Below, one piece after another: positions 35,721 through 64,000 of a stretch of DNA of 64,000 bases (the first letter of the stretch is position 1; every line of letters starts with the position of its first letter). Location of the stretch: assembly GCF_001194135.2 (NCBI RefSeq), contig NC_068990.1, forward strand, positions 48,271,271 through 48,335,270, in the 5' to 3' direction. A program made the position numbers and the translations under genes. The stretch comes from Octopus bimaculoides (Eukaryota). Under the pieces are notes generated by a model. The model was not told where the DNA came from. It saw nothing but the letters and a program-made list of their open reading frames with translations, and made no database searches.

Positions 35721-35860
35721 TCACATTCTGTTACTCATGTTTGCACGTAACATAAGAGTTCCATCAACCCAAGTGTTTGGTCTAGATATCATTGACTGCC
35801 ACAATGAGATTTCATCACCAACAGCATCCATCCAATCAACATATCTCCGACTACAAATAC
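35721..35860 (-). CDS. SYTL4/5: Synaptotagmin-like protein, last coding exon (end of C2B, stop TGA)
   Basis: Acceptor ttctctttAG at 35862-35861, phase 1. Encodes (G)ICSRRYVDWMDAVGDEISLWQSMISRPNTWVDGTLMLR...*, matching the Slp4/5 C-terminal motif VDWMD..GEE..LW..M...P..W.EGTL.LR. Confidence 0.93.
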
Positions 35861-37564: not shown

Positions 37565-37773
37565 CTGATCCTAAATTCAATCGAACGCCACCAAGAAAAT
37601 CATTACTTGATATACGATCATAATCCCACAGAGTGAGTTCTAGGCATCGGTCAGCCAGCAAACTAGCAGACACATCTTCAAATATAAAGCAATGATTCCA
37701 AACCGGGTTGCAATTTTTCTTTACCACTGGAGTTTTTTGCTTTGATGATCGGTTCTTTTCTGGTAATAAATAC
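37565..37773 (-). CDS. SYTL4/5: Synaptotagmin-like protein exon (C2B core)
   Basis: gcAG|...|GTaaga, phase 2 to phase 1. Encodes YLLPEKNRSSKQKTPVVKKNCNPVWNH...LELTLWDYDRISSNDFLGGVRLNLGS. Confidence 0.95.
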
Positions 37774-37799
37774 CTGCAAAGTGAAATAGAATTCTTTTA

Positions 37800-38157
37800 T
37801 TTTTTAACTGGTTTCAGACTTTGGACTGTGACCATGCTTGGGCACCACCTTCAAGAGTTTAGTCAATCATATCAACTCATCTCCCCAGTACTTATTTTTA
37901 AATCTGATACTTATTATATCTACTATATATCTATTTATTAATATCCATTTGTTGAACCATGAAGTTATGAGACATAAACAAACACAGACACACACATACA
38001 ACAATATTCCTTACAGATTCCATCAGTCAAATTTCACACAAAAGGCATCAGTCAACTTGAGGCAAAAATAGAAGACACTTGCCCTAAGTGCTACACAGTG
38101 AGATCAAACCCAAGACTATATGGTTGCAGAGTAAACTTCTTAATCACACAGTCATGT
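37800..38157 (-). mobile_element. SINE family A (degenerate, intronic)
   Basis: Co-linear with the 21092-21512 copy (tggactgtgaccatgct..., gaagacacttgccc..., taatcacacagtcatg). Confidence 0.75.
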
Positions 38158-38189
38158 AAAACTTATTCATAGCCAAACATTTTACAAAC

Positions 38190-38345
38190 CTAGGCTTGTG
38201 GCAGTGAGATTAAGAAGTTTGCTGCACAGTCACTTGGTTCTAACTGTGACTTCTCTGCATGGTAGCTTGGGCAAGAATCTTCTACTATGGACTTGGGTTG
38301 ACTTGAGTGGAACTGGGTGAACAGAAATTGTATAAGCCCATTGAA
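38190..38345 (+). mobile_element. SINE family A head, inverted relative to the adjacent copy
   Basis: gattaagaagttt...gggcaagaatcttctactat...gttgact matches the family A 5' half. Confidence 0.6.
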
Positions 38346-39963
38346 TGGGCTCTATTTGTGATTCATGGGTCCAGTCATGTTAAACAGTGCTGCACTACTC
38401 TAGCATGAAGATTATATTAAGGGTATGAGTATTTGTGATATACTCATCCATTTCCATTATAACTCATTAACTAAGTGGTTCTGTAGATGGAACAACTGGA
38501 TCTCACATTCATCAAAATCGAAAGACAGTCAATCATTATGATCCCATATTAGCACTTATTTCATATGTGACTAAATACATACATATTCAAATATTCCCAC
38601 ACAGGAACATGTGCTACAAGATAGCTTAAGTATTAACAGATTGACATATGTATTATATAGATGGTTACATGTGTTACCAGCACAAAAATAGATCTACCAA
38701 CCAAAGTTTGATATACTTCATGTTCTAACATGTGATTCCATAATCTGGCAATATACCAGAAAGATTAAAAATACGCAAATTACTTTTGAAGTAAAATGGA
38801 AGAAAATTTTAGATAGTAGTTGGAACAAAGTTTATCAAACAAGTAAGAATGATATAAAAACAGCCATACATAACAACTGTGATTAATAAGAAATAAGAAA
38901 TGAATATGCTAAAGTCATATCCTCTAAATAGTCGATGAAAAACTTCCAAAATGTAACATAAAATGGAAATACTAAAATGGAAGAAAGCCATATATACATT
39001 GAAAACATTACAAATACAAAAGAGTTAGCCATCATCAAAGCATGAACAACTAGATGTTAGATAAGTTAAGTCAATTTATAAACATGAGCTCACACACAAC
39101 TTCCATTAGTTTCTAAATGGATTAAATAACTACTGTGTTAATAGTGGCTGCTGCGAAATAGTAATGTACTTATGATCTAGAAAGTACTTATGATATTAAG
39201 AGGTGGTAAGAGAAAATGTTTACTGAAACATAAGGAAGAATAACAGAAACATTCCTACTAAACAGAAGACATAATAATGGTGCCTTCTAATGAAAAGTGA
39301 CCAATACCAAGATGAAATGTCAGCAAGAAAATTCCTTAAATATGGATTGAACTAATACAAGGTATGCCTACTGTTTTGATTTATTTAATATATAAGTCAA
39401 AGCAACAGAAACTGTTTATGAGAATAAAGAGAGAAGAGAACACACTTATACACCAGTGCTCTCTTCTGTGGTCAAATTAGTAACTCAAGTTTTCAGTTCA
39501 GCAATGAAGTGAAAACTTACTGAAACATCTATATGTTCCTTTAGATAACTTGAGATAAATATTCTTTATTTTCTTTATGGGCTATATTTGAAGTTCAATG
39601 TCACTGATTATTTAATTCACATACAATATGTGAAGAAATTGACAAATAATCAGTTTTCTGCTTGATATAATGTATCAGACAATATTTCTTCTTGTCTTGA
39701 AATGTGCACACTGATTGTGAACAAAGGGTTATTGTTCATAGAAACAGTATCATTTGTTTACAATCATCCATAAAAGTATATCTAGGCTGTTGTTCATTAG
39801 AATAGGGGAGACATTACCTATGCTGGATATGAGTAGGGATTGGCAACAGGAAGTGCATTCAGTAGTAGGAATATTTGCTTCAACAAAGTAATCATATGAC
39901 CCATGCAAGTACAGAAAACTAGACCTTTAAAATGATGACTGTTTGTTCGTTTGTTTGTTTGTA

Positions 39964-40255
39964 TGTATGTCATTATTCAGTTTTATTTCAAAATTTTTTG
40001 CCAATAGAGAAAGAGTTGATTTCTAACCTAGATCCTGGAATTTCAACAACATTAACAAGATATTTTTGCATGTATGTGCGTAAATGTGAGTATTTGGAGT
40101 CAATGCATGTGCAGACTTGTATGTTTTGTTTTATGTATGTAGTCTCATGTATACAGTTGCATGTCTAGACATGCGCATATGTATATGTGTATGTCATTAT
40201 TCAGTTTTATTTCAAGATTTCTTGCCAATAGAGAAGGAGCTGGTTTCTAACCTAG
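39964..40255. repeat. ~70-bp direct duplication about 223 bp apart
   Basis: tgtatgtcattattcagttttatttcaa...gccaatagagaa.gag.tg.tttctaacctag at 39964 and ~40187. Confidence 0.8.
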
Positions 40256-40344
40256 TATGTATATATGTAAAATCATTGTCATTATTATCGCCTTCCCCTA
40301 CTTGCATGGACTAGAGAAGTTTTTCCCAATATTGTGTCTCATCC

Positions 40345-40700
40345 CTTGCTGCTATCTCTTGCCATCCTATTCTTGATATTCAGCATCCTGAGATCAGCCT
40401 TCATCAATTCTTTCCATATCTTCCTTTGTTTTCTCTTTTATAGGGTCCTCTATTTGTACCACTTGGCCCTTTTTCACCAAATCCTCATTCTTTGTACACA
40501 TCAGGTGTCCATACCATCTCAGTCTTTCTTTGTCAGCACACTCATGCTTCATTGTTCATGCATACCGATAATATTACATATCCAGTGAAGCATGCAAACT
40601 TTACTTCTACCCAGCCTTTGCACATCTTCCACATTCAATGTCCATTTTCACTACTGCGCAACATTGCCATTGCTCCATCACTCAGAGCATTGTTTTGGTG
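40345..40700 (-). mobile_element. RTE LINE 3' fragment (degenerate, intronic)
   Basis: Minus-strand remnants of the RTE C-terminus (ctgagatggtatggacacctg = LRWYGHL; MLHWICNII). Confidence 0.65.
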
Positions 40701-40729
40701 CCATATATCATTTTAGTAAAACAACTTAC

Positions 40730-40953
40730 CCTTTACAGAAAGGATCAGAATATCCTCCAGATCTAACTGCTGTCAAATTTTTGGCCTCTTTAATGTAAAC
40801 ATGAAGTTGTCCTCCATCTGAAACTTCAGATCTGCCATCTCTACTGTGCTTTAAAGATGTTGTGGACCCCGTTAGCAGTTTATCACCAGTTACAAACTTT
40901 AATGACAAGGTCAGCTCGCCTTTGTATGAAAGAGATGATGGCAAATATTCTTG
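40730..40953 (-). CDS. SYTL4/5: Synaptotagmin-like protein exon (C2A-C2B linker and start of C2B)
   Basis: tctgtAG|CAA...GG|GTaagt, phase 0 to phase 2. Encodes QEYLPSSLSYKGELTLSLKFV...GQLHVYIKEAKNLTAVRSGGYSDPFCKG. Confidence 0.95.
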
Positions 40954-41041
40954 CTACAGAAAACAAAAAACAAAAATTTATCACTGTTAATTCATTATTG
41001 AAATAGTTTATTAGTTTTGTTGGTCCCTGTGGCTTTCTTAA

Positions 41042-41313
41042 CCCTTTAACATTTGGACTACTCAGTCAAATGTATCACTTATTTTTTTCAAATTGTTTTG
41101 ATTAATTCAAAAAAAAATAAGTGATACATTTATTTTTTTCAAATTGTTTTGAATTAATCATTTATTATCTTGTAGCTTTGAGGCTTCTATGATGTGACAG
41201 TTTATTTTCAAAATTACATTGTAGGGTAGGTGTGAGAGGCTAGATCTGGCTGATTAAAGCAAAAGATATATAAAATATTTGGGCCAGATATGGTCAGTTT
41301 AAATACTAAAGGA
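41042..41313. mobile_element. piggyBac-type MITE
   Basis: Flanked by TTAA at 41038-41041 and 41314-41317; imperfect TIRs CCCTTTAACATT / AATACTAAAGGA. Confidence 0.55.
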
Positions 41314-41749
41314 TTAAAAGAAAGCACCGTTTCTTCATTCTAATTCTAAGTTACTTAGTTTTCTTTTTACATCATACATTTTATGAAAATCAGCACCATT
41401 TGTTATAGGTTTCCAGTGGACCAATCACAGGTTTATAGTCTTTCTTATGTAAGAGACTGATAAAGAGGAGCCTGAGTGGCTTGGACACAATAAATAACAG
41501 ACACATTGAACAGTTTGTGAATTTATGCCAACATTTCTTGGTGCTTAATAATATACATTACTTTACAAATAAAAGTAAATATAAAATAAATATAATAATG
41601 GCTTATGTGTTTTTTAAACAGCTATTAAGATATTTTCACAATGTAATTATTTTAGCTTCAACAAACAACCTGAGACTAAGCCATTTGCCAAATAAATACA
41701 ATTCTGAACTCAAACTACTTTTTGGTATGCAAAGCCAATAATTTTTTCT

Positions 41750-42128
41750 CTTTGTTATTGGACTGTGACCATGCTGAGCATTGCCTTAAAGGGTTTAGTT
41801 AAACAAATCAACCCCAGTACTTATTCTTTTTAAGTACTTATTCTATCAGTCTCTTTTTTTTTATAACCAAACTGCAAAATTACAGACATAAACAAACCAA
41901 CACTGGTGGAGAAACACATGCGTGTGTGTGTATGTGCATGTGAGAGAGAGAGAGAAATAGTCTTCCACACAGTTTCAGAGTTTCCATCTACCAAATCCAC
42001 TAATAAAGCATTGGTTGGCTCAGAGCTTTAGTAGAAGGCACTTGCCCAAGGTGCTACACAGTGGGACTGAACCCAAAACTATGTGGTTGCAAAGTAAGTT
42101 TCTTAACAGCATAGTCATGTCTGCATCT
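41750..42128 (-). mobile_element. SINE family A (degenerate, intronic)
   Basis: Co-linear with the other family A copies (ctaccaaatccact..., gtagaaggcacttgcccaaggtg..., gggactgaaccc). Confidence 0.8.
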
Positions 42129-42197
42129 AAAGGTTTTTATCACAAAATGTTTCCACTGGGAACCCTGATGAAAATAAGTTTATAGATACTTTTGTTA

Positions 42198-42467
<270 letters not shown>

Positions 42468-42627
42468 CTAAAAGAGAAAGGTAAGTGAATGAGAGACAAT
42501 TTCACAAATAAAAACATACTGTATTTTATAGAATAAGGGATGCACAGGCACATTAGATATACCACAATTTCAGCAGTATATGTTTAAGAAAAAGATTTTT
42601 AGTGCCTTATTAGCCCAACTTCACAGA

Positions 42628-42829
42628 CTGTATTTTCCGCACAGAAGTCAATGTAGTATATAGTGTAAACTTGTAGTTTAAATATTCAAATATTGTCACT
42701 ATCTTTCCAAATACTGAATTTCACATGAAATTTTTGGTTCTCCAAAGTTGTCTTGGTGTATAAAGTAACCTACCTTTTGAGTTGTAAATTTTGGTCTGAA
42801 AAATTTGGCTTGTGTGCTGGAAAATATGG
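42628..42829. mobile_element. Tc1/pogo-type MITE (same family as 49255-49433)
   Basis: TIR-like ends CTGTATTTTCC... / ...GGAAAATATGG-TA; shared internal gtaaattttggtct...tttg.cttg segment. Confidence 0.55.
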
Positions 42830-43005
42830 TAAGGACCTGGGGTGATCTTTTTGAGACATTTCATGGAGGAGAAAAATGTGTGCCATATTTGTCATCAAAT
42901 ACAGTAAATTAAATTTACGAAAAACAAGAAAATGTTTATAATGATAATTATTAATTTTCAGGTTGTTTTATACTCAAAAATGATAAATTACCAAACTGTC
43001 TAGAG

Positions 43006-44946
43006 CAAAGGTTCTCAACCCATTTTGGCCAAAGGCCCCCTTCTGACCCTTGGAGTCACCCCCCCACCGCTCTAGAAAATATTTTTATTTTTCAATATAC
43101 TACTTATTTTGATATTAGCAGGTAATGATTAAAAAATAAAGGACGTCATTTTACCTATGTGCTTGTATGCAGTCAGGAGTACAGATGTACAAATTGAAAT
43201 GTAAAAAAAACAAAAAACAAATAATGAATTGAAAGTTTGGTAATTGCATTTATTTCCACCATGCAACACTTATGAGATCAACATGTTGTCTATCAAAAGA
43301 GTGCTCTTTGGTACAAGTAAATGCCAATGAAATCATTTCAAACCTTTCTGATTTCCCTTATCAAAACTTGTGCAACAATCTGACATATAAGTTATTGTCA
43401 CCTGGGAAGAGGATTTTTTATGCTCAAGAAAGAGAGTGTATTTGATAGAAAATGTTGAAATACATATGTACTTCATAAAAGTAGAAAATTGTGGAGGATG
43501 GTATTCACTGTACTTGGATCTAGTTTGACTGAGCCACAAAATCAGCTTCCTTTTAAAATGATGTAAAAGAATCTGAAAATTTGTCATATTAAAGGTTCAT
43601 TAAAGGTTATTCAGGATCTAGTTTGTTTCATTCACAAAATCTGTATATTTAAAAGGAAGTAAAAAATCTGAAAATTGGTTATCTTGATGCAGTTTTCCAT
43701 GCTTATTCCTATGAAGCCATCAACTTCTGGAGAAAAAATTTGACACACACAAAATCTTTTTTTAATTTCTGGCTTCATAATACAGAATTTCCAAATAATT
43801 TTTTAAATACTTCAAAATCAAAATTGCGTAAATATGTGTGTCAGAAACAGTAGTTAAAAAATAAGAAAATAGATTTTGGGGAGATCTCTTATTATGACTG
43901 ACTTTTATTCCATTATTCTAATATCTTCACCACTCTTCCAATTTCATTTTTCTTCTTAAAAAGAAGGCTTTCATCTACTTGGAGCATATGTTGTACTACT
44001 GCATGGCTGTCTGTCTGCTAATATTGCTGATGGACATGCAGCATATCACTGGCATTTCACAAATAAAGTCCGGGATTATGTGAAAAAGTCTGGAGACTGT
44101 CAATTGACTCTCATCCATAAAAGTATTTAAAAATTATTTGGAAATTATAAAGAGAAACAGATGGTAGATTTGGACTGTCTGTATTTTAAAACCATAAATT
44201 TTAAAAAAATTGGTGGGAGGGGAGATTTTATTCTTGTATAATCATATCAATTCCATTATGCAGGAGTCAGAAAAGGAAAAAAAATTTGTAAAAATTCATA
44301 AAAATACAAAAGTTATGAGGTGTTTTAAGCACACNNNNNNNNNNNNNNNNNNNNNNNNNNNNNNNNNNNNNNNNNNNNNNNNNNNNNNNNNNNNNNNNNN
44401 NNNNNNNNNNNNNNNNNNNNNNNNNNNNNNNNNNNNNNNNNNNNNNNNNNNNNNNNNNNNNNNNNNNNNNNNNNNNNNNNNNNNNNNNNNNNNNNNNNNN
44501 NNNNNNNNNNNNNNNNNNNNNNNNNNNNNNNNNNNNNNNNNNNNNNNNNNNNNNNNNNNNNNNNNNNNNNNNNNNNNNNNNNNNNNNNNNNNNNNNNNNN
44601 NNNNNNNNNNNNNNNNNNNNNNNNNNNNNNNNNNNNNNNNNNNNNNNNNNNNNNNNNNNNNNNNNNNNNNNNNNNNNNNNNNNNNNNNNNNNNNNNNNNN
44701 NNNNNNNNNNNNNNNNNNNNNNNNNNNNNNNNNNNNNNNNNNNNNNNNNNNNNNNNNNNNNNNNNNNNNNNNNNNNNNNNNNNNNNNNNNNNNNNNNNNN
44801 NNNNNNNNNNNNNNNNNNNNNNNNNNNNNNNNNNNNNNNNNNNNNNNNNNNNNNNNNNNNNNNNNNNNNNNNNNNNNNNNNNNNNNNNNNNNNNNNNNNN
44901 NNNNNNNNNNNNNNNNNNNNNNNNNNNNNNNNNNNNNNNNNNNNNN

Positions 44947-44993
<47 letters not shown>

Positions 44994-45555
44994 TTGGGTC
45001 TTTAACAATCAGGGTCAATTTAAGTTCAGTCACATAAAGGAATTAAAAACTGCAACACAGCAATCATATACATGCAAACATACCCATACGCACACACACA
45101 AATACATACCTATTAGCCACTCCCAAAAGCCAGTTTGATCCAAAATTCTGACCACCATTCTTTATATATTTGCACAAAAACACACACACATTCAGCTCTT
45201 CACTTTTATTCATTTTTTTCTTTTAATCGTTTGTCACTGAATAGTGACAAATAGATGAATATCTATTTTTAGTTTTTGTTTTGGGGGTTTCACTTTAGTG
45301 ACACCAGTTATACATGGTACCAGGAATTTGCTTAGTATCGTCAAAGTGGAAAAAGTGCTTTTTTAGTTTTTGAAAATTTGGAACAAAAAGGCATGGTTTT
45401 CTAAACTGACTGTCGCAGAGATGTGAAAATATGGCTACTACTTGTTGATTTCAAATTAAACTTACCAAAGACGAGGGTCTTCCAGCGCCCCCATCAGTCT
45501 CTTAATGCTCCCATAGTGCCCCTTTGCTCCAAAACGCCCCCATTGAAAACCTTTG
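43006..45555 (-). mobile_element. hAT/Charlie-type transposon, degenerate, spanning gap 44335-44946
   Basis: TIRs CAAAGGTTCTCAACC / CATTGAAAACCTTTG and a perfect 8-bp TSD GTCTAGAG (42998-43005, 45556-45563), the NTCTAGAN target typical of Charlie elements. Decayed transposase-like sequence inside. Confidence 0.85.
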
Positions 45556-46794
45556 GTCTAGAGCTATCATAGGAAGTATTTCTATTTTAGAGTTTTATTT
45601 GAATTCAATGATTTTTCTGTGGTAAAAGTAGTAAATTGTTGAGAAAACTGAAATTTCATGAATGAAATTTAAAATGGCAAAACATATAGCATACACATTT
45701 AACCTTGAGTAGTTCATGAATTATAAAGAGAGAAAGAGAGAGAGAGAGTAACTGAGAGAAAAAAAACATGCAGTTACAAAGAACTATAATGAACAAGTGG
45801 GGTACTAAATTAAAGTTTCTTAGTACATGACTTTGATGATTGAGAACATAATTTGAATACACTTCACATTGTTTTCATTATAATCATTGTCATCATCATC
45901 TTTTGACATCTATTTTTCATACTGACATGAGTTGAATGGCTTGACAAGATTCAATGGGTCTGAGGACTCCAATGTCTATATCAGAAAGGTCTCCAAGGCT
46001 TGATACTCTTCCTAGTACCGACTATTTTGCAGGGTGTACTGGATGCCTTTTTTTTTCATGACAAGTACATTAATGAGGTCACCAAGCAGCTCACAAGATT
46101 AAGAACCCCTTCAACTGAGTGGAAGCAGCTAAGGGAAGAAGTTGTATGCTAGGAGACAAGACAATAAAGTATGAAAGAAGGAGCCAGGACAGATTTCTTT
46201 ATGTGGAGGAGCTACATGGTTACTCATGTTATAAAAGACTGTAATCAAGAGAGTAACCAAAGTGGAGCTGGTGGATACAAAATTGTGGTGATAAGATGTT
46301 AGGACAAACTCTTAAGGTTCAAAAAGGTGAACATAAGTGAGTGGAGATAGTGGGGTGGGTAGAGTTTGTAAGAGTGTATGGGGAGAGTGAGTGACAGATA
46401 AACAGAGAAAGATGAGGAGTGAATGAAGAACAAGGATTAAGGAGTGGTTATTTGTAATCTATAACATCCCTTTTATCTTCATGGCTCTCTCCTCTACTAC
46501 CCTCTAATTATCTCTCCCTGCTCCTCCTGTATTCCAGTTGATTTTTCTTTTAGTGACAGAATAGTTTAGTGAGCAAAATGTATCAGGGGCAAAGAAAGTT
46601 TAGAGAATTTATAAACCTGCTAGAAACAAAGGGTTTTTGTTTATATAGCAAAAACAGATTACATGGAGCATTGCTTAAGATCATGATGTTGCATGACAGT
46701 GAATAAAACTGAATCACAGTGATTGGAAATGAATAGTAGAATATGAGCCATTGTAAAAATGCTAAATGTAAGTAAATTCAGAAAGCAATTCGAT

Positions 46795-46985
46795 TCTAGA
46801 CCTTGCTTCCACACCTGAAACTACTCCTCTAGTTCTGATATTGACTCAGCTATTAGAGCAAGGTCATCAGCACAGAGAAGCTCCCAGTGGCATCCTGTCT
46901 TGAATTATTGCCTGGAGGACTATGATGAATAAGAGGGGGCTGAGGACTGATCCTTGGTGGACCCCTACCCCTACCCAGAAAGAAA
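46795..46985 (-). mobile_element. RTE LINE RT fragment
   Basis: Minus translation VGVHQGSVLSPLLFIIVLQAI followed by a decayed YADD region. Confidence 0.8.
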
Positions 46986-46994
46986 ATCCATCAG

Positions 46995-47840
46995 CTTGTG
47001 CATGAGGACCATCAGAGGACAATCAACGACATTGCTGGTTTGTCATATGGGTCCATGCAGGCAATCTTAACAGCTGAATTGAACATGTGGCATGTCTCTG
47101 CCAAGTTTATCTCCCACCTGCTGACCACTGAGCTAAAAGAACATCACATTGAAGTCAAGATTTCCATCAGCATGTTCCTGATGACCCATCCTTCATGTCA
47201 AGGATCACCACTGGTGATGAGAGTTAGGTCTATGGATACAACCCCGAGATGAAGCAGCAGTCACCACAACGGAAGTGTTCTTCATCTCCACAACCAAAGA
47301 AGGCATGACAGAGCTGCAGCTCAATCAAGAGCATGCTCATCGTTTTTTTTTTAGACATCCGCAGTATTGTGCATTGAGAATTCTTCCTCCAGGGCCAGAC
47401 TGTCAACTGTGATTCTATTTTGACATTTTGAAGTGTTTGAGGGAGGACATTCAGCAAAAGCAGCCAGATCTGCAGAGCACAAGAGATTGAATACTTCTCA
47501 ATGACAATGGATCCTTCACTCATGAGTTTCTCACCAAAAACAACATGGTATCACTTCTGCACCCACCCTATTTGCCAGATTTAGCACCTATGGACTTCCA
47601 TCTCTTCCCCAAGATGAAAATGTAGCTCAAAGACCACTGTTTTAACACCATTGTCAAGATCGAGAGTGAATCACAGGAGGTCCTTAACTCACTTATGGAA
47701 AACAACTTCCAGGCTGGATACCAAAAGTGGTAGAAATGCTGGGACTGGTGTAGTGCTGTGACTATTTCAAAGGAAATGATTTAAAATAAGTTATTTTTTA
47801 TTAAACATAACTAGTCCAGGAATTTTTTGATACCACCTCA
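46995..47840 (+). mobile_element. Mariner transposon, 5'-truncated and degenerate
   Basis: Remnants GLSYGSMQAILTAELNM..VSAKF, RITTGDES, HPPYLPDLAPMDFHLFPKMK. The right TIR ...TTTTTTGATACCACCTCA is followed by TA at 47841. Confidence 0.88.
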
Positions 47841-47915
47841 TATAATGCAGGATCGCAGAGTAGTTCAATTCCTGACAGTGTGGAAAAGTAATACTCACAA
47901 GATAATAATAATAAT

Positions 47916-48487
<572 letters not shown>

Positions 48488-49254
48488 TTAGAAAATCATA
48501 TTTGAGGAAACATTATAAAAATGCCTTCACATTATTAAGTAATAATTTTATGAGGGTTCTCAATTTCTAAAACAACAACGGTCTTTTTTTTTTTTTTAAG
48601 TACAGTTTCTATTATCAGTACCTCTAATATCTATATACCCCAAAAATGTTTAAATCATTACATTTAAGGCAAATGGAAATAATAAGTTTTAGATCATAAG
48701 AATTACATATCACTCCAGGCATTTTAGGTAAGAAAAAAAAAGAAAAAAGTATTATCACTATACACCGTTATCCATTTTCATTTCGTTACACATTTAAGAT
48801 TGGTTCTTGGATTTTAATCCCACTTAATAGAGCCCTAAGCCATAATGACATAGGTTAAAGAAATGCAAAATTGTACACCAGGCAAAATTTATAAATTGTT
48901 GTCATTAGTGGACAAATTTGAAAATTAATTAGTCAATTGACATAAGACTAGCACTGTGATACCCACCTCGAAAGGTCTTTCCAAATACATACTGAATCAA
49001 CTTAACTCCAAATATTTGAGTTGCATAGCTCATTTCAGCAGAAAATTGCAATGAGTTTTGAAATGTACACTGTTTTTAAGATATGGAAAGCTTTAGAATA
49101 AACTTACATAGTAAAATCACTCACACTCAGATAATTTTGTGATCAATAAACAACTTTTACACAATATTTCACTAATCCTATATGAAGTAATATGAATATA
49201 TATTTATAAAAATAAATATATACAATCAAACAAAGGCAAGATATTAGAATTGTA

Positions 49255-49433
49255 CTGTAGTTTCCAGCATACAAGTTGATGCAGTATATGATGTGTCACT
49301 ATTTTCCCAAATCCCGCAACATTTCACATAGAAATTTTAGTCCTCCAAAGTCCTCTTGGTATATTAGTCAACCTGCATATTTTGACTGTAAATTTTGGTC
49401 TCTACAATTTGACTTGTTTGCCAGAAAATACAG
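49255..49433. mobile_element. Tc1/pogo-type MITE with TA TSD
   Basis: TA-CTGTAGTTTCCAGCATACAAG ... CTTGTTTGCCAGAAAATACAG-TA. Confidence 0.65.
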
Positions 49434-49461
49434 TACTTCAAAGTAAATAAATATTTCTTAC

Positions 49462-49646
49462 GGATCTGATTTGTTCTTCTTGACATCAGCAGGGGCTAAA
49501 TTACGACACTGCTTGACACGAATTTCAAGGCAACTTGTCTTATAGTCATAGTCCAAACCAAACTGAATGTCGCCAGTCACATTTATTTTACCATAGTTGA
49601 CTTCACCGGCATTGCTGTAGTAACTGCTTAGACTGTCACGGCTTCC
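49462..49646 (-). CDS. SYTL4/5: Synaptotagmin-like protein exon (start of C2A)
   Basis: tttcAG|GGA...CC|GTaaga, phase 0 to phase 2. Encodes GSRDSLSSYYSNAGEVNYGKINVTGDIQFGLDY...RNLAPADVKKNKSDP, like the Slp4/5 S.YSEAG.FG.I.VTG.I.F.L.Y motif. Confidence 0.96.
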
Positions 49647-50084
49647 CTGAAATGAGATGATTTTAATTAGCATGATACAAATATAATAGAGAAGAATAAG
49701 TGAAGTGATGGATTGATGACGATGAAGAGGCAATATACAAAATAGTTGTTTGTATTTTTTTTTAATAATTGATTCATTAATATAGAATAGAATTATAACC
49801 TACCTGAGTGAAAAACAGCAGAATGCATGGAGAGGAACAATTCAACATTTAAGAAAAATTCAACATTTAAGAACTTCTTGTGAGAGTGCAATTTGTTGTT
49901 TTTTTCAGAAACAACAAATGGTGAAAGCAGGTTACTGATATAAAACAAATTCATTACAAAAAGTTGATGAACCAAGTGCAAAATTAAGAGAGGAGAAAAG
50001 TGGGTCCAATGTTGGAAGGTTCAAGTGTAAAGGAAAATTTAAAACCTTAAACCTGTGCATAAATTATTTATCCAGAAGTGACTC

Positions 50085-50290
50085 TAGGTAGGCTGAAGGT
50101 GATGTGAGCAAACAAGATTATTTTTTTACCAAAAGATGGTTATAAGTAGGTTGAAGGTGATGTGAGAGAACAAGATGTTTTTTTTTTGCCAGAACAAAGT
50201 GGTTATAAGTAGGCTGAAGGTGATGCGAACAAACAAGGTTTTTTTTTTTTTGCCAAAAGGTGACTATAAGCTAAAGATAATGTGAGTAGA
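50085..50290. repeat. Degenerate ~62-bp tandem repeat, about 3.5 units (intronic)
   Basis: The unit ggttataagtaggctgaaggtgatgtgagcaaacaagat(t)ngccaaaa recurs. Confidence 0.85.
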
Positions 50291-50458
50291 CAGGAGCAAG
50301 CAAAACAGAGAAAAGCAGGAAATTGCCAGCTATCTCTTCTCCAGAAAGCTATTTTGTGTTTGTTATGTTTTGTTTGTATGTCACTGTAGCCAATCAGCTC
50401 ATATGAAGGCTTATTTGTGCTTCGGGTGTAAAGGAGGGAGATCAACCATTTCTCTTAC

Positions 50459-50575
50459 CATCGATGATGTCAAGCCAAGACTGGAAGACATGCTCTGTCC
50501 ACTGCGTATAGATTGGCTGCCTTTCATAAGAAAATCGTGGTTTTCCCCATCACTTTCGCCATGAGTCGATGCTAA
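50459..50575 (-). CDS. SYTL4/5: Synaptotagmin-like protein exon (Ser-rich pre-C2A linker)
   Basis: ttttctttctggcctcAG|TTA...ATG|GTaaga, phase 0/0, 39 codons LASTHGESDG...SMSSSLGLTSSM; phase fits both neighbours. Confidence 0.88.
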
Positions 50576-53023: not shown

Positions 53024-53220
53024 TCCTTCAGCTTCTGATATTGTGATTGATGGTAAAGATGGGTCTATATCTAATCTACGTTTGCTTCCATTGGTTCGGT
53101 GGTCTGGTGTAGTGTGAACTGAACTGCTGTCACTTTGTTGATCATACATATAGCTCTGATTGCTGATTTCAGATCGAGCATCCTCACTGCTTGCTTGAGA
53201 TGCATGCTTTTGTTTCTTCC
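53024..53220 (-). CDS. SYTL4/5: Synaptotagmin-like protein exon (linker)
   Basis: ctttgtatttttAG|GG...GGA|GTgagt, phase 1 to phase 0. Open frame (G)KKQKHASQASSEDARSEISNQSYMYDQQ...PSLPSITISEAEG. Found by manual translation; not in the ORF track. Confidence 0.8.
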
Positions 53221-54689: not shown

Positions 54690-55060
54690 GTCAATCTTCA
54701 TCAGTCCTTTGCAAATGTCAACCTTCACTTAACTCTTGCATGTCTCAACCTTCACTAACCCCTTATAGGTATCAACTTTCACTATCTTCTTACTAGTGTC
54801 AGCACTGTCTCCTTGCATGTATCAACATTCACAGCATTCACTGTCTCCTTGTGAATATCAACACTTACTTCCCCTTACAAATGTCAACATTTGCTACCCC
54901 TTAAGAATGCCAATACTCACTGTCCCTTACAAACGTCAAAATTCAATGTCTCCCTACAAATGTCAACCTCCATTGTCCATTTACAGATGTCTATACACAC
55001 TGTCCTGCTGAGAAATGTTAACATTCATTGTCCATTTACAAATATTAACCTTCACATTTT
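54690..55060. repeat. Degenerate ~27-bp minisatellite, roughly 13-14 units
   Basis: Recurring cactgtcccttacaaatgtcaacatt-like unit. Confidence 0.8.

Positions 55061-55738: not shown

Positions 55739-55773
<35 letters not shown>

Positions 55774-56401: not shown

Positions 56402-56466
<65 letters not shown>
56402..56466. repeat. (CT)n microsatellite
   Basis: Seen directly. Confidence 0.97.
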
Positions 56467-56470
<4 letters not shown>

Positions 56471-57164: not shown

Positions 57165-57510
57165 ATTTTACTTGTTTCAGTGCTATGCTGTGGCACTGCC
57201 TTGAAGGGTTTAGTTGAACAAATTGACCCTAATATTTATTTCTAACTCTGATATCTATTCTATCAGTTTCTTTTGCCTACTTATTCTATCTCTTTTGGTG
57301 GGTACAAGCACAAACACAAAGACACACACACACACATGTATATATACACACACATGATGGGCTTCCATACAGTTTCTGTCTACCAAATTTCACTCACAAG
57401 GCATTGGTCAGTCCAAGCTATAGTAGAAGACACTTGCCCAAGGTGTCACTCAGTAGGACTGAACACAAAACCACATGGTTGCAAATGGAGCTTCTTAACA
57501 TTGCAACTAT
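57165..57510 (-). mobile_element. SINE family A (degenerate, intronic)
   Basis: Co-linear with the other copies (tacttgtttcagt..., ctaccaaatttcactcacaagg..., gtagaagacacttgcccaagg). Confidence 0.8.
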
Positions 57511-58032
57511 GCCTGCACTTTAAAATGATAATACAAATGATTAAAATTGTTAGAAAATATACTTAAAATAATTTGCATCAACATGAGGAAGATGGACAAA
57601 AAAAAATTAGTATTCACTAGTTTCAGATGTATTAATAGAAGTCAGAAAGTTTTACCAGTTTATAGAGATAATTCCATCAAAGCTCTAAAAGCATAACAGA
57701 AGGTTTAAAATAAATATCAAAGTAATTTTATTTAAAATTGGGGATAATTCTGAGCAATATATAACCAACAGAAATTCAAAATGTTAAAAATAGAGGTGCA
57801 CAGGTACAAAGTATAAAATATAAAAATAGAGGTGCACAAGTTATGTTAGCTGAGAAAATTGAATAAATGATATAAATTCACTTTATTGTCCAAATAATAG
57901 ATACTGATACAGTGGTTAGTTGATATAATAAAAGAGTTCTTCACTTTACAAGGAAAGTAGGAAAAACAAATTAAAAAGAAGACAGTCAGTATTGTTGATA
58001 TCAGTTTATGAGAGGATATTAAAGATGTCTAC

Positions 58033-58108
58033 CTGAGTCCACAACAAAATCAGATGAATCAGTGTTTACATACTGTTGAGGAGAATCTGTTAAATCTGAC
58101 TGAACAAA
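58033..58108 (-). CDS. SYTL4/5: Possible in-frame continuation of the giant exon after the TAA, ending at a phase-1 donor
   Basis: The same frame stays open as FVQSDLTDSPQQYVNTDSSDFVVDS, then CAG|GTAGAC at 58033/58032. The phase matches the phase-1 acceptor at 53220. Confidence 0.5.
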
Positions 58109-61100
58109 TTAATGTGATGGTTGAGTGTTATATTTTGCTTTGTTCCTGTTGGGTGTAGCAGGATTTGGTAACATTTCAGAAGCAGATGAAGTATATTCAA
58201 AAGCATCACTTAATTCTGTGGGTTTAAAGATATTGTCATCCTCATACAAAGGATAATTCAGTGCTTTTGCTGAATATTGATTTTCAGGAGATTGTTTTAA
58301 GTGTTTGTAGTTTCTAGAAGTATTATTATTTAGGAATTGTTGATATGCAATTTTTTCATCATTGAGAACCATATCACGGAGATTTGCAATTGCAGACATT
58401 TCTCTAACAGGATGACTTTGAGATGAGCATGATTCTAAAAATGATGGGGTGTCTTGATAATTTCTTTCTCTAGGAGAAAAATCTGACGTAATAGATTTTG
58501 CTTTGACAGGACTATCAGTATCATTCCATTTAGATAGTGTGTCTGTTTCCGAATTATTCTCAAAGTGTGAATCAATTTCAGTTTCATTTACACTTTCAGT
58601 GAAATGAGGTGAATAATTTTTCTGAGACTGTCTCAATTTTATTGCAGGTTTTTGTGGATCATAATGATCAGAACTTGACTGTTTAGAAGGGTCTGATTCT
58701 GCATAAGGCTCTGATGACAGGTTTTGATGCTTGGGATATGATGAATATGATATAATGCCATTATTATATTCAACAGGATAACCAGAGATATTTGATTCTT
58801 TATCATCATCAGAATTCATTTCAACAAAATATACTCCAGACTCAGATGTTTTGGACAAGTTTTTGTTATTGCTATCTGATTTAGATGGTTTTCCGAACTT
58901 TTCTGACTGAGAACTATTAGGTTCAATAGAAGTATATTCCTTGACAAAAGTAAAAGATTGATCATCAGGTTCCAGAGTATCTGTTCTAGTTACATCCTGA
59001 TTAAATTCTAATTCAACTTTTAATTTTATACCGTCTTCCTCCAGAGGGTAGATATCCTCATTAGAATTTACACTGTCAAGTCCATATCCAGCTTTTTTAT
59101 TCAAATATGTGTCTTCAATACTTTTTTGCTGAAGATTGTTTTCCTTTATAGGAAAATCAGCTGTATTGTGAGTTTCCAGTTTATTCCCATAGCTAGATTC
59201 ATACTTAACAAATTCATTAGACTTTTCACTTCTCCCAGAAGTTTTTATATTATTGTCGTTTTTAGCAAATAACTGTGGTCTTGTGTATGTATATATCCAA
59301 TGTCCAGAATTTGTTTTGGAATCAGAAAGAAAAGATTCCTTCCTTTCAACCCAATAATCTAGCAATGGCTCTGAAACATCAGTGGTCATAGATGGTGCAG
59401 GAGGTAAGTTTTTATTTACTCCAACCACATCATTAAATTGTTTTATGGTATTTTTTGTTTGTGCTAAATCCTTAACATCTAAGTTTTTATCTTCCTTCAT
59501 TGGCATGGAGTATTGTTTCTGGTTATGCTTGATGCTAGCACTTCCAACTGATTCAGGGGTAGAATCATTTTTCTTAAAACCAATCCATGAACTGAATCTT
59601 GGTATTATTTTACTACTAGAGAGTGTATCTTCTGACACAGAGTTAAGATTGACTGCTTCAGATTCATTCTTTGATTGAGAAACTTTATTTCCAAACGAAA
59701 CAGAAGTAGTTGATAAAGGTTTATGTTGTAATCCAAACCCTGATGATAATTTTTCCTCAAATGACTGAGAAATTACAGGTCTCTTTTTCTTCAATGATGC
59801 TTTACAGTTTGGAGAAAATGTGTTTTCTTTTCTGTCAATCCAGTGAACAGCTTCATCCTCAGGTTTACTAAGGACCAAAGTTGTATCACTGTTCTCCTTT
59901 TTATCATCAATACTTAGTTCCAGTTTATTACTGGTCATTGTAGAGTGGACATCAAGTGAAGAACTACTTAGTTTATCTAATTCTTTCCCCATTTTTTTTG
60001 GCAATATTTTATTATCAGCAGATACGCTTACTTCTGAACTAACTGCCTCTTTTGATTTTGGAGAAACCAAATTTGCCACATGTTTGTCAGCTGATATGTT
60101 TCCTTCTGAACCAAATGTCGTCTCTTTTGATTTTGGAGAAGCCAAACTTGCCACATGTTTGCCAGCTGATATGTTTTCTTCTGAACCAAATGTTGTCTCT
60201 CTTCTTTTTGGAGAAGCCAAGTTTACCATATGTTTATCAGCTGATATATTTTCTTCTGAACCAAACGTTGTCTCTCTTCTTTTTGGAGAAGCCAAATTTG
60301 CCACATGTTTGTCAGCTGATATGTTCTCTTCTGAACCAAATGTTGTCTCCTTTGATTTTGGAGAAGCTAAATTTGCCACATGTTTGCCAGCTGATGTGAT
60401 TTCTTCTGAACCAAATGCTGTCTCCTTTGATTTTGGAGAAACCAAATTTGCCACATGTTTGTCAACTGATATGTTCTCTTCTGAACCAAACGTTGTTTCT
60501 TTTGATTTTGGAGAAGCCAAATTTGCCACATGTTTGTCAGCTGATATATTTTCTTCTGAACCAAATGTTGTCTCTCTTCTTTTTGGAGAAGCCAAGTTTG
60601 CCACATGTTTATCAGCTGATATGTTTTCTTCTGAACCAAACGTTGTTTCTTTTGATCTTGGAGAAGCTAAATTTGCCACATGTTTATCAGCTGATACGTT
60701 TTCGTCTGAACCAAATGTTGTCTCTCTTCTATTTGGAGAAGCCAAGTTTACGACATGTTTATCAGCTGATATGTTTTCTTCTGAACCAAATGTTGTCTCA
60801 TTTCTTTTTAGAGAAGCCAACTTTGCCACATGTTTGTCAGCTCGTATATTTTCTTCCGAACCAAATGTTGTCTCATTTGATTTTGGAAAAGCCAAGTTTG
60901 CCACATGTTTATCATCTGACATGTTTTCTTCTGAACCAAATGTTGTCTCCTTTGATTTTGGAGAAACCAAATTTGCCACATGTTTATCAGCAGATATGTT
61001 TTTGTCAGGACTAAATGTTGATTCTTTCGCTTTGTATATCGTCATTTTTGCTAACTGTTTAACAGCAGATATGTTTTCTTTTGAGCCAAATGCTGTCTTT

Positions 61101-64000
61101 CTTTCTGGAGTAGCCAAACTCGCTACATGTTGTTCAGGTGATTTTTTTGTGTGTAGGCTAATGGTTGTCCCTTTTGCCACATGTTTATCCTCTGATATAT
61201 TTTCTTCAGAACCAAATTCTGTCTCATTTCTTTTTGGAGCATTCAGTTTTGTTACATGTTTATCAGCTGGTACCTTTTCTTCTGAACCAAATGTAGTTTC
61301 TTTTGTTTTTGAAGAGGTCACTTTAGGACCAAATGTTGATTCTTTTGTTTTGGGTAACGTCAATTTTGCTAACTGTTTCACAGCAGATATGTTTTCTTCT
61401 GAGCCAAATGTTGTCTCTTTTGTTTTTGGAGAAACCACATGTACCACATGTTTATCATTTTGTGTCTTTTTATCTGGATCAAAGGTTGTCTCTTTTGCCA
61501 CATATCTATTTTTTGTTATACTTTTATCTGGCCCAAATGTTGTCACTTTTGTTTCTGGAGAATTCAAATTTGCATCAAGTTTGACAGCAGTTATGTTTTC
61601 TTCTGAACCAAATGTTGTCTCTTTTGATTTTGGAGAAACTAAATTTGCCACATGTTTGTCAGCTGATATGTTTCCTTCTGAACCAAATGTTGTCTCTTTT
61701 GATTTTGGAGAAGCCAAATTTACCACATGTTTGCCAACTGATATGTTTTCTTGTGAACCAAATGTTGTCTCTTTTGATTTTGGAGAAACTAAATTTGCCA
61801 CATGTTTATCAGCAGACATGTTTTCTTCTGAACCAAATGTTGTCTCTTTTGATTTTGGAGAAACTAAATTTACCACATGTTTATCAGCAGACATGTTTTC
61901 TTCTGAGCCAAATGTTGTCTCTTTTGATTTTGGAGAAACTAAATTTGCCACATGTTTATCAGCAGACATGTTTTCTTCTGAACTAAATGTCTCTTTTCTT
62001 TTTGGAGAAGCCAAATTTTCCACATACTTATCAGTTAGCACCTTTTCATCTGGACCAAATGTTGTCTCTTTTGCCACATGTCTATTCTCTGATATATCCT
62101 CATCTGGCCCAAACATTGTCTCTTTTGTTTTTGGAGAAGCCAAATTTGCCACATGTCTATCAGCTGATACCTTTGTGTCTGGACCAAATGTTGTTTCTTT
62201 TGTTTTTGGAGAAGTAACTTCTGCCACATATTTATTATCTGGTATCTTTATATCCGGGCCAAAAGTTGTTTCTTTTGATTTTGGAGGAGTCTTGTTTGTT
62301 ACAAGTTTGTCAGAAGATATATTTTCATCTGGTCCATCTTTTGTTTTTTGAGAAGCCAAATTTGCCACATGCTTATCAGCAGATATGGTTCCAGATGTTT
62401 CATTTTCTAAATTCAGTTTCATATCAGGTTCACTACTGAACACCCCTACATTTTCATAAGTTGGTATATTCTTCTTATCAATTTGTTTATCAACATGAAC
62501 ATTGGATATGTTAGCAGTTGATTTATCAGATTCACAGTGAGGTTTTGATACAACATCTTTGGGACAATCTACAGTTGTTTCACTCTTATAATCAACATTT
62601 ATTTTTAATGGAGCTTTGCAAGTTATTTCCTTAACTGGGGTGGTTATCAAACCAGATTTTTGCATAGCTTCACAAGTTCCAAATTTCTTTACTTCAGAAT
62701 GATTACTACTTGAGAATTTCTTTACTTTATTATCTGATTGGGAATGTCTAGGAGGACTTTGATCAACTCTACCTGGTCTATTTTCAGCATACTTCTCTGG
62801 AAATGACTTATAATCATTAGATGTAGATTTTTTCTCGTTTGAGTCATCTTTTTCAGATTTGTGCTTGCTTCTTGTTGCTTTTGTGCGCTCAGCAGAAAAG
62901 AATGTCTCTTTTCGATCTATCCAATAGAGAGATGTCTGCTGAGAGGTTTGGGCTGCAGTAATAGGCTTAGAAAGGGAACTACTAACTGTAGGCTTATCAG
63001 TTACTGGTTTTGATGCTAAGTGAGAGCTTACATCAGAAGGGACCACATGACCTATAGATAAAATATCTCCAGAATTATTAGAAGTTTTAGGTTTACTTCT
63101 TTTGATGGTTTCTCTAGAACTAAGTGGTAATTTAGTTTCTGTATGATCTATCCAATCATTTGTAGATGACAAAAGACTTGATTTAGTTGATATTAATTCA
63201 GGATGGATGGGTACCTTTCTACTATCACTGGCTGCAGGTAATAACCTAAGTTTATCATTGTTATATTTTTCAGGATCAGATACATCCTTCTGTTCAGATC
63301 TTATTCTTGAGACTTGGTTAGTGTTATTTGAAGGTGAAGGCAAGGATAGTGATATTTCATCTTTATGTGAAAAAGAATCCAACTGGGATTCCTTAACAGA
63401 GGAGATTATTTCTTTTTTGTCTTGAATAGGGCTTTTAGAATTATTAACTGAGTGAACACTTTTTGGTTTCGTGGCAAGAAACGTAGGTTCCTTTTGAGAA
63501 TTAGGGTACTGGATACCAGAATCTGAGTGGAAGTCTTGAATATTAGTTTTGTAAAAATCTGTTTGTGGTTTATGTTGAATGGTATGATCTTTATCAGAAA
63601 CTTGTCTACTTCCATTGTTTTCTGTTTCCTGAGACTCTGAAATTTGCTTATACTTAGCGTCCTTCACATCAGCCACTTGATTCTCTGGAGTATCTTTACT
63701 TGAATGATGAAGTGGCACTTCTCCTCTAAATGAAAATCTAGATTTTCCTGCAACTGTAACTGTTTCTATTTGTGAATTTTTCTTCTTTTTAACATTCTTT
63801 ACTTGCTCTGAAGAGCTCTTAGCTGGTGTACATTTAGAATTTCTCTCACCTGAGGAGTCTTTAATACTTCTTTCAAGTAAATTCCTTGATACACTGTCAC
63901 TGGGTTTCTTTCTTGAGAATACAATTCTTTGTTTTTCTTGGATTTGAATTTTTAACTCAGATCTGTCAATAAAATATGTATAATCTGGTGTGTCACTTGT
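58109..64000 (-). CDS. SYTL4/5: Giant coding exon (at least 5.9 kb, ~1960 codons, low complexity S/K/E/T/D rich), probably part of the synaptotagmin-like gene; acceptor outside the window
   Basis: ORF 58109-63718 (1869 aa). The listed start is only a GTG; manual translation shows the frame stays open to the window edge (TSDTPDYTYFIDRSELKIQ...FRGEVPLHH). Same strand and 5 kb upstream of the Slp exons; assignment to the gene is inference. Confidence 0.82.
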   Translation of the reverse strand, partial: TSDTPDYTYFIDRSELKIQIQEKQRIVFSRKKPSDSVSRNLLERSIKDSSGERNSKCTPAKSSSEQVKNVKKKKNSQIETVTVAGKSRFSFRGEVPLHHSSKDTPENQVADVKDAKYKQISESQETENNGSRQVSDKDHTIQHKPQTDFYKTNIQDFHSDSGIQYPNSQKEPTFLATKPKSVHSVNNSKSPIQDKKEIISSVKESQLDSFSHKDEISLSLPSPSNNTNQVSRIRSEQKDVSDPEKYNNDKLRLLPAASDSRKVPIHPELISTKSSLLSSTNDWIDHTETKLPLSSRETIKRSKPKTSNNSGDILSIGHVVPSDVSSHLASKPVTDKPTVSSSLSKPITAAQTSQQTSLYWIDRKETFFSAERTKATRSKHKSEKDDSNEKKSTSNDYKSFPEKYAENRPGRVDQSPPRHSQSDNKVKKFSSSNHSEVKKFGTCEAMQKSGLITTPVKEITCKAPLKINVDYKSETTVDCPKDVVSKPHCESDKSTANISNVHVDKQIDKKNIPTYENVGVFSSEPDMKLNLENETSGTISADKHVANLASQKTKDGPDENISSDKLVTNKTPPKSKETTFGPDIKIPDNKYVAEVTSPKTKETTFGPDTKVSADRHVANLASPKTKETMFGPDEDISENRHVAKETTFGPDEKVLTDKYVENLASPKRKETFSSEENMSADKHVANLVSPKSKETTFGSEENMSADKHVVNLVSPKSKETTFGSEENMSADKHVANLVSPKSKETTFGSQENISVGKHVVNLASPKSKETTFGSEGNISADKHVANLVSPKSKETTFGSEENITAVKLDANLNSPETKVTTFGPDKSITKNRYVAKETTFDPDKKTQNDKHVVHVVSPKTKETTFGSEENISAVKQLAKLTLPKTKESTFGPKVTSSKTKETTFGSEEKVPADKHVTKLNAPKRNETEFGSEENISEDKHVAKGTTISLHTKKSPEQHVASLATPERKTAFGSKENISAVKQLAKMTIYKAKESTFSPDKNISADKHVANLVSPKSKETTFGSEENMSDDKHVANLAFPKSNETTFGSEENIRADKHVAKLASLKRNETTFGSEENISADKHVVNLASPNRRETTFGSDENVSADKHVANLASPRSKETTFGSEENISADKHVANLASPKRRETTFGSEENISADKHVANLASPKSKETTFGSEENISVDKHVANLVSPKSKETAFGSEEITSAGKHVANLASPKSKETTFGSEENISADKHVANLASPKRRETTFGSEENISADKHMVNLASPKRRETTFGSEENISAGKHVASLASPKSKETTFGSEGNISADKHVANLVSPKSKEAVSSEVSVSADNKILPKKMGKELDKLSSSSLDVHSTMTSNKLELSIDDKKENSDTTLVLSKPEDEAVHWIDRKENTFSPNCKASLKKKRPVISQSFEEKLSSGFGLQHKPLSTTSVSFGNKVSQSKNESEAVNLNSVSEDTLSSSKIIPRFSSWIGFKKNDSTPESVGSASIKHNQKQYSMPMKEDKNLDVKDLAQTKNTIKQFNDVVGVNKNLPPAPSMTTDVSEPLLDYWVERKESFLSDSKTNSGHWIYTYTRPQLFAKNDNNIKTSGRSEKSNEFVKYESSYGNKLETHNTADFPIKENNLQQKSIEDTYLNKKAGYGLDSVNSNEDIYPLEEDGIKLKVELEFNQDVTRTDTLEPDDQSFTFVKEYTSIEPNSSQSEKFGKPSKSDSNNKNLSKTSESGVYFVEMNSDDDKESNISGYPVEYNNGIISYSSYPKHQNLSSEPYAESDPSKQSSSDHYDPQKPAIKLRQSQKNYSPHFTESVNETEIDSHFENNSETDTLSKWNDTDSPVKAKSITSDFSPRERNYQDTPSFLESCSSQSHPVREMSAIANLRDMVLNDEKIAYQQFLNNNTSRNYKHLKQSPENQYSAKALNYPLYEDDNIFKPTELSDAFEYTSSASEMLPNPATPNRNKAKYNTQPSH
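60010..62385 (-). repeat. Coding tandem repeat, 75 bp / 25 aa, about 33 units (consensus SEENISADKHVANLASPKSKETTFG)
   Basis: Period 75 seen directly (e.g. tttgattttggagaa at 60426 and 60501); units counted from the translation. Confidence 0.97.

Follow-up and report, generated by a model that had tools for sequence, protein, structure and literature searches.

The 64,000 nucleotides (nt) of Octopus bimaculoides DNA analyzed here (contig NC_068990.1, positions 48,271,271 to 48,335,270; hereafter the window) are an exact match to assembly GCA_001194135.2, chromosome CM046610.1, and the region discussed is an octopus synaptotagmin-like (bitesize-type) locus. On the minus strand, an open reading frame (ORF) stays open for 1963 codons from the window end at 64000 down to a TAA at 58111-58109, and 76 nt past this TAA lies a candidate splice donor from which the frame could be joined to exons encoding C2 domains. 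We conclude, with a probability of about 0.72, that the TAA is the genuine stop of the last coding exon of a giant Slac2/exophilin-like protein, which is devoid of C2 domains and bears a synaptotagmin-like protein (Slp) homology domain (SHD; FYVE_2 in Pfam).

The stop codon of the giant exon

An initial annotation of this DNA had drawn attention to the in-frame TAA after some 1960 open codons. Our count to the window end gave 1963, with the ORF continuing beyond it: a further 890 nt upstream in the GCA_001194135.2 record are still open. The positions given there for the TAA, the 25 open codons that follow it (58108-58034; FVQSDLTDSPQQYVNTDSSDFVVDS), the donor at 58033, two AATAAA hexamers and the acceptor at 53220 (tttttag/GGAAGAAA, phase 1) were all correct and all on the minus strand. 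The AATAAA at 57887-57882 is kept in Octopus sinensis, as are all its surroundings, and the background frequency of this hexamer on the minus strand is 1.4 per kb; the giant terminal exon may use the two copies as poly(A) signals. The run of N closest to the stop is at 44335-44946, so the site is far from any gap. The features around the stop are as follows (a slash marks a splice junction):

58109..64000, minus strand: stretch of the giant last coding exon within the window (1963 sense codons and the TAA), comprising low-complexity linker and tail
58109..58111, minus strand: TAA stop codon, annotated end of the coding sequence (CDS) of a product of 3013 amino acids (aa); AAA (Lys) in O. sinensis
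58022..58108, minus strand: 29 open post-stop codons (FVQSDLTDSPQQYVNTDSSDFVVDSGRHL), untranslated in O. bimaculoides as annotated
58027..58035, minus strand: candidate 5' splice site CAG/GTAGAC, with exon end 58033, phase 1, and GT at 58032-58031
58019..58021, minus strand: second in-frame stop, TAA, 29 codons after the first; TGA and the annotated stop in O. sinensis
57882..57887, minus strand: AATAAA, 222 nt past the TAA, a plausible candidate poly(A) signal of the terminal exon
57727..57732, minus strand: second AATAAA, 377 nt past the TAA

In the GCA_001194135.2 record of the locus (L003; window coordinate = 64891 minus L003 coordinate), the CDS of the 3013-residue product ends at L003:6782, that is, at window 58109, and the TAA is thus a stop already recorded in the public annotation of the same assembly. 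The next gene is annotated as synaptotagmin-like protein 5 (XP_052826916.1, 413 aa) and starts at L003:10001, or window 54890. A Pfam scan of the giant ORF found no domain and no C2. Tandem C2 domains in the same product as the giant exon, by which a Slp would be recognized, were not found: the giant ORF ends at the annotated CDS end, and the C2 products (413-467 aa) are annotated separately. The N-terminus of the O. bimaculoides giant protein lies outside the window, and its FYVE_2 domain is predicted by orthology. The 3013-aa product (L003:1-6782) has no Pfam hit on record, unlike the FYVE_2-bearing O. sinensis and Argonauta orthologues; either its model is without the SHD exons or it was never scanned. 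No papers on octopus synaptotagmin-like proteins were found in a literature search.

The comparison with orthologues carries most of the argument. When the last 760 aa of the giant ORF served as the query of an exhaustive HMMER scan (1.84 billion representatives), the only matches were O. sinensis LOC115215841, the Argonauta orthologues and a single spurious repeat hit. The giant-exon orthologues had escaped a word-index search of proteins, in which a chimera of tail, post-stop peptide and 53220 exon retrieved the two C2 proteins alone; DNA of the O. sinensis tail was obtained via the neighboring C2 gene. LOC115215841 shows 76% identity to the giant ORF, and its isoforms, annotated up to X32, range from 2482 to 3205 aa. 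As seen in the codon alignment, O. bimaculoides CAT TAA TTT corresponds to O. sinensis CAT AAA TTT, a single T/A difference. Every one of the 21 O. sinensis isoform sequences that were read ends in ...NTQPSHKFVQSDLTDSSQQYVNTDSSDFVVDSGRHL and runs unspliced through the candidate donor (...DS-G-R-H-L-stop). The ending in full is ...NTQPSH-K-FVQSDLTDSSQQYVNTDSSDFVVDSGRHL, with a TGA stop where O. bimaculoides has its second TAA, so that the C-terminal 29 residues of the O. sinensis protein are the counterpart of the O. bimaculoides post-stop codons. FYVE_2 is the sole Pfam domain listed for the clusters holding the O. sinensis isoforms, with no C2, and our own Pfam scan placed it at residues 9-120 of the O. 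sinensis giant protein (P0004; E = 5.3e-18, 65.8 bits versus a cutoff of 27.2).

In Argonauta hians, the orthologue is a separate protein of 7722 aa with FYVE_2 (PF02318), which ends at a TAA of its own. Its last exon aligns to the octopus tail with 35% identity (E = 5e-108), and the last aligned block lies 16 residues before the O. bimaculoides stop and 22 before the Argonauta TAA, placing the two stops within about 6 codons of each other. Another stop occurs two codons past the Argonauta TAA, without a post-stop ORF, and nothing alignable was found in the Argonauta sequence past its TAA until the KRQKH exon. The giant ORF therefore ends in about the same position in two octopod families, and its product is without C2 domains in all three annotations. 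Argonauta was also considered as an outgroup for the polarity of TAA versus AAA and was rejected, given that the last 16 to 22 residues and everything downstream are not alignable; by an argument from length, the early stop would be mildly favored as the ancestral state.

Among the options raised by the initial annotation, an alternative terminal exon giving a C2-less isoform is thus borne out by the CDS end at the TAA, by the O. sinensis isoforms left unspliced at the donor and by the separate FYVE_2 product of Argonauta. That annotation had also held that a sense codon in orthologues would refute its more exotic options, and the O. sinensis AAA is such a codon. Given this sense codon and the annotated CDS end, neither recoding nor a poison isoform is needed.

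How freely the stop could move was judged from divergence. Between 59800 and 54400, the identity of O. bimaculoides to O. sinensis was 93-97% per 200-nt segment, coding or not. The ratio of nonsynonymous to synonymous change (omega, Nei-Gojobori) was as follows:

non-repeat tail, 561 codons: 0.60
last 100 codons: 0.95
two wrong frames, as controls: 0.75-0.84
downstream non-coding DNA: 0.44-0.92

Since omega cannot tell the true frame from the control frames or from non-coding DNA, conservation was rejected as a coding test of the post-stop peptide. The post-stop 87 nt carry 2 substitutions relative to O. sinensis (1 synonymous, 1 nonsynonymous), a rate as in the flanking non-coding DNA, and the intact post-stop frame says nothing either way, because the divergence is short and identity is equal in non-coding DNA. 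Judging by these values, the C-terminal tail appears to be nearly unconstrained at the time scale separating the two species, and a 30-codon shift of the stop would therefore plausibly be neutral. We propose that, in such a near-neutral, low-complexity tail, the exact position of the stop would drift between species: O. bimaculoides would end at the TAA, O. sinensis (AAA) 30 codons later and Argonauta at roughly the same point as O. bimaculoides. The GT at 58032 would most likely be a fortuitous match, located in the 3' untranslated region in O. bimaculoides or within the last codons in O. sinensis.

The one-base difference between the species might also mean that the usual codon is AAA and that the T at 58111 is not fixed, representing either a nonsense allele (heterozygous or private) of the sequenced animal or an error of base calling or assembly. 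Such a case would agree with the difference being of a single base, with the 29 following codons being intact up to the same second stop as in O. sinensis and with the existence of one assembly lineage only for the species (the window is identical to v2). However, about 3-7% of positions differ between the two species throughout, so one more is expected, and the site is distant from any gap. In a nearly unconstrained tail, moreover, a stop need not be deleterious, Argonauta ends at about the same position, and the intact 87 nt are uninformative over such a short divergence. We consider an unfixed T improbable. The suggestion of a nonsense allele or an error in the initial annotation stands insofar as there is a variant, a real one-base difference between species, which is not necessarily an error.

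If the UAA were recoded, through programmed readthrough or through A-to-I editing of both adenosines (giving UII, read as Trp), a 30-residue extension or a spliced C2 product would result. By ADAR chemistry, a single A-to-I edit of UAA yields UGA or UAG only, so two edits would be needed. Coleoids do edit heavily, stop-loss changes of UAG to UGG are recognized in coleoid transcriptome analyses (PMC8382921), and 29 codons are open after the stop. Nevertheless, the codon is a plain Lys codon in O. sinensis, Argonauta has a second stop two codons later, a post-stop open frame of such length arises by chance in 15-19% of cases, and the two post-stop substitutions are uninformative on constraint. 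The local RNA, taken as 300 nt around the stop, gave a minimum free energy of -44.5 kcal/mol against a shuffle mean of -47.9 (z = +0.78), and 156 of 200 shuffles folded at least as well. For readthrough or double editing, as envisaged in the initial annotation, we thus found neither a conserved stop with a conserved downstream ORF nor local RNA more structured than shuffles, and we regard such recoding as highly unlikely.

The candidate donor and the C2 exons

The window has a G+C content of 32%, and in its non-coding DNA 19% of stop-to-stop intervals span at least 25 codons and 15% at least 29 codons. Donors were scored with a generic metazoan matrix that was not trained on octopus. With this matrix, CAG/GTAGAC falls within the top 3.4% of 3413 GTs, with a score similar to those of the weaker true donors of the same gene and well under those of GTAAGT donors. 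A phase-1 GT scoring at least as high as the candidate occurs before the next in-frame stop after 2.3% of non-coding stops. The combination of stop, open frame and phase-1 GT is therefore only mildly unusual, and it was picked post hoc. An alternative donor at 58209 (taa/GTGATG, a conserved weak phase-1 GT in the TELSD codons) was rejected, as 23% of GTs score at least as well and no model supports it. As a point of method, a phase-compatible GT and an open frame past a stop weigh little in AT-rich DNA with relatives that are about 95% identical throughout.

The downstream exons are 100% identical to O. bimaculoides A0A0L8G3J5 (A0A0L8G3J5_OCTBM), and their products contain two C2 domains (Pfam). 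They are preceded by two internal first exons:

54869..54890, minus strand: alternative first coding exon MLTFVRG of the C2-only XP_052826916.1, donor GAA/GTAAGT, phase 1
54794..54818, minus strand: alternative first coding exon MQGDSADT of the C2-only XP_014784551.1, donor CTA/GTAAGA, phase 1
53024..53220, minus strand: first shared exon of the C2 part (-KKQKHASQ...ISEAEG), phase-1 acceptor, donor GGA/GTGAGT; conserved in Argonauta
35724..50575, minus strand: remaining C2A/C2B coding exons, approximate tblastn limits
50575-50459, minus strand: C2-part exon (cassette)
49667-49461, minus strand: C2-part exon
48454-48353, minus strand: C2-part exon
42467-42297, minus strand: C2-part exon
40953-40729, minus strand: C2-part exon
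37826-37536, minus strand: C2-part exon
35921-35724, minus strand: C2-part exon

The RefSeq models join MLTFVRG/R and MQGDSADT/R into the 53220 exon, both with strong donors. A third partner is found in Octopus vulgaris CAI9729431.1 (705 aa, gene range 194 kb), whose residues 13-299 match residues 150-436 of the O. sinensis giant protein with 100% identity. This model goes on ...ISQTKKT/GKKQKH, indicating that a far-upstream exon is joined to the 53220-type exon and the giant exon is skipped. The residue after KKT in the giant isoforms is E (O. sinensis) or D (Argonauta), and both codons begin with G, as a shared phase-1 donor requires. The pipeline behind the O. vulgaris annotation drew on Iso-Seq and RNA-seq as well as on protein alignments and ab initio predictions (PMC10700109). 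The in-frame splice from 58033 to 53220 put forward in the initial annotation is hence right in its geometry, phase 1 to phase 1; the need for it falls away, as 53220 has other upstream partners.

With the TAA taken as a genuine stop, the C2A/C2B exons would be expressed from the internal first exons at about 54.8-54.9 kb and, per the one O. vulgaris model, would also be reached from the far-upstream exon. Under this model, alternative 3' ends of a single ancestral SHD-linker-C2 (Slp) gene would be formed by the giant exon and by the C2 exons; the locus may be one gene with two ends or may be two genes.

The donor at 58033 may instead be real, at a low level or as an ancestral junction, in which case the O. 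sinensis giant Slp would be about 3,600 aa (SHD, linker, C2A, C2B) and O. bimaculoides, with a TAA 76 nt before the junction, would produce only a substrate of nonsense-mediated decay (NMD) or a truncated protein. The phase-1 to phase-1 geometry and the 76 nt from stop to junction agree with this, the latter fitting the rule for NMD (more than 50-55 nt) on the condition that the 58033 donor is used. The site is also among the top 3.4% of GTs in a configuration with a chance level of about 2%, it is unchanged in O. sinensis, whose frame stays open as far as the GT, and the orthologue of the bivalve Dreissena (2051 aa) holds SHD, long linker and C2 in one protein. Nevertheless, the donor is unused in the retrieved O. 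sinensis, O. bimaculoides and Argonauta models, and the giant product is C2-less in all of them. Argonauta is without a comparable donor or post-stop ORF, the G at position +5 is missing, and the two internal first exons have much better donors. The conservation of the site carries no weight, because its flanks are 93-97% identical. A real donor at 58033 is, in our judgment, unlikely. As for the poison isoform suggested in the initial annotation, no retrieved model from O. sinensis, O. bimaculoides, O. vulgaris or Argonauta uses the donor, and the idea is not upheld.

In its most developed form, the GT at 58032 would be a genuine low-usage donor from which O. sinensis and O. vulgaris (AAA) make a rare giant Slp of about 3,600 aa, an isoform that the O. 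bimaculoides UAA either abolishes via NMD or leaves to be rescued by recoding. We consider this quite unlikely; if true, it would represent a recent species-specific loss or rescue of one isoform class in a membrane-trafficking gene.

Several observations weigh against the TAA as a genuine terminal stop. A phase-1 GT as good as the candidate follows merely 2.3% of non-coding stops. In O. sinensis, the frame is open up to the candidate GT and closed 4 codons later, and an unspliced internal exon would look alike. The transcript evidence is second-hand, coming via gene models only; the O. vulgaris join could be an annotation merge, and RefSeq is without a join of this type in both O. sinensis and O. 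bimaculoides. Furthermore, the v2 assembly of O. bimaculoides re-uses the original contigs, so the T at 58111 is without independent confirmation.

We also observed further features in and around the C2 part. The 117-nt exon at 50459-50575 (LASTHGESDGENHDFLMKGSQSIRSGQSMSSSLGLTSSM) is present in XP_029640499.1, XP_014784551.1 and A0A0L8G3J5 and skipped in XP_052826916.1 and O. vulgaris CAI9729431.1, and it is therefore an in-frame cassette exon between the linker and C2A. The first coding exons of the C2-only Octopus models (54700-54900) sit in short tandem repeats of VDTYKG and VKVD units. In Argonauta, the C2-only model starts (L001:9977-10069) in a 24-nt MSRDLYGE repeat, and this start in particular looks like the choice of a predictor and not like a verified one. 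About 900 nt at about 53400-54300 of O. bimaculoides have no counterpart in the O. sinensis locus (all gaps in MAFFT) and were probably inserted in one lineage, into the intron that immediately precedes the 53220 exon. Comparison with Argonauta (blastn and tblastx) showed no additional conserved exons in the interval from 58033 to 53220, the only matches there being microsatellites; a (TC)33 microsatellite at 56402-56467 and dinucleotide runs at 55740-55775 and 57304-57354 explain all blastn matches in that interval.

Repeats and motifs of the giant ORF

The coding strand of the giant ORF contains a 75-nt tandem array of about 27 copies with 73% matches (60047-62286, minus strand), encoding units of 25 aa (KETTFGSEENISADKHVANLASPKS). 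This 25-aa unit is hugely expanded in the 7722-aa protein of Argonauta. On the plus strand, an antisense ORF of 755 aa with a TTG start (60084-62351) most likely arises from the periodicity of the repeat and does not represent a gene. The giant ORF (58112-63997, minus strand) also holds four copies of a motif, W-[IV]-[DE]-R-K-E-x-F-x-S, namely LYWIDRKETFFS, VHWIDRKENTFSP, DYWVERKESFLS and NDWIDHTETKLP. The motif is kept in Argonauta (HWIDRKE, YYVDRREYFHS) and may be a linear interaction motif.

Seven runs of N, 1861 nt in total, are present in the window (8679-8943, 14744-15337, 20335-20344, 23531-23723, 26342-26428, 31198-31297 and 44335-44946). The intron separating the C2 exons at 48353 and 42467 contains one of them, and none is close to the stop.

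Comparison with known systems

The puzzle of the in-frame TAA dissolves on orthologue comparison and is of little consequence as such. What is left is one base change, in an unconstrained tail, that sets the stops of two congeneric species 30 codons apart, and a locus at which octopods would express the SHD and C2 parts of a single synaptotagmin-like locus largely as separate products.

In-frame stops followed by an open frame are known from coleoid stop-loss editing sites, where UAG becomes UGG (PMC8382921). The octopus stop resembles these in having an open frame behind it, but it is UAA rather than UAG, it is without local structure, and it is not conserved.

The fly counterpart, Drosophila bitesize (btsz), is the single synaptotagmin-like gene of that animal and, like the octopus locus, has many isoforms, with an N-terminal zinc-finger/SHD in some. 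The short C2-only octopus products (413-467 aa), made from internal starts, are comparable to the isoform BtszF (PMC10153138). However, all Btsz isoforms are reported with C2 domains (PMC10153138), in contrast to the octopod giant-exon products, which have none. In the bivalve Dreissena polymorpha, LOC127850016 (2051 aa) has an orthologous SHD (40% identity over residues 8-224) and C2A/C2B domains with 60% identity. Unlike in octopus, SHD, long linker and C2 are there in one annotated polypeptide. This full-length Slp was considered as a guide to the ancestral exon junction and set aside, since its linker could not be aligned with the giant exon of octopus.

By definition, a Slac2 protein has an SHD but no C2 domains (PMC10153138). 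The octopod giant product agrees with the Slac2/exophilin class in having an SHD and no C2, as judged from the domains in O. sinensis and Argonauta and from the CDS end in O. bimaculoides. The closest likeness is to exophilin-5 (EXPH5, Slac2-b), in the very long low-complexity remainder encoded mostly in one huge last coding exon. Most of the EXPH5 coding sequence is in a single large final exon, and the pathogenic variants of the human gene from c.1395 to c.3650 all fall in exon 6 (PMC4695416). By homology at the level of the domain, the octopus SHD would be a putative Rab27-binding region. On the other hand, HMMER and Pfam detected no similarity to the vertebrate Slac2 proteins (MLPH, EXPH5, MYRIP) outside the SHD, so orthology to them is not indicated, and no myosin- or actin-binding region was identified in the octopus giant protein. 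A further difference from Slac2 is the presence, 5 kb downstream and in the same orientation, of the C2 exons of an Slp. For this reason, the C2-less product has the look of a fission product, or an alternative 3' end, of the one Slp gene of invertebrates and not of a separate paralogue. Overall, a giant C2-less Slac2/exophilin-like protein beside a short C2-only protein would parallel the split between the Slp and Slac2 paralogues of vertebrates.

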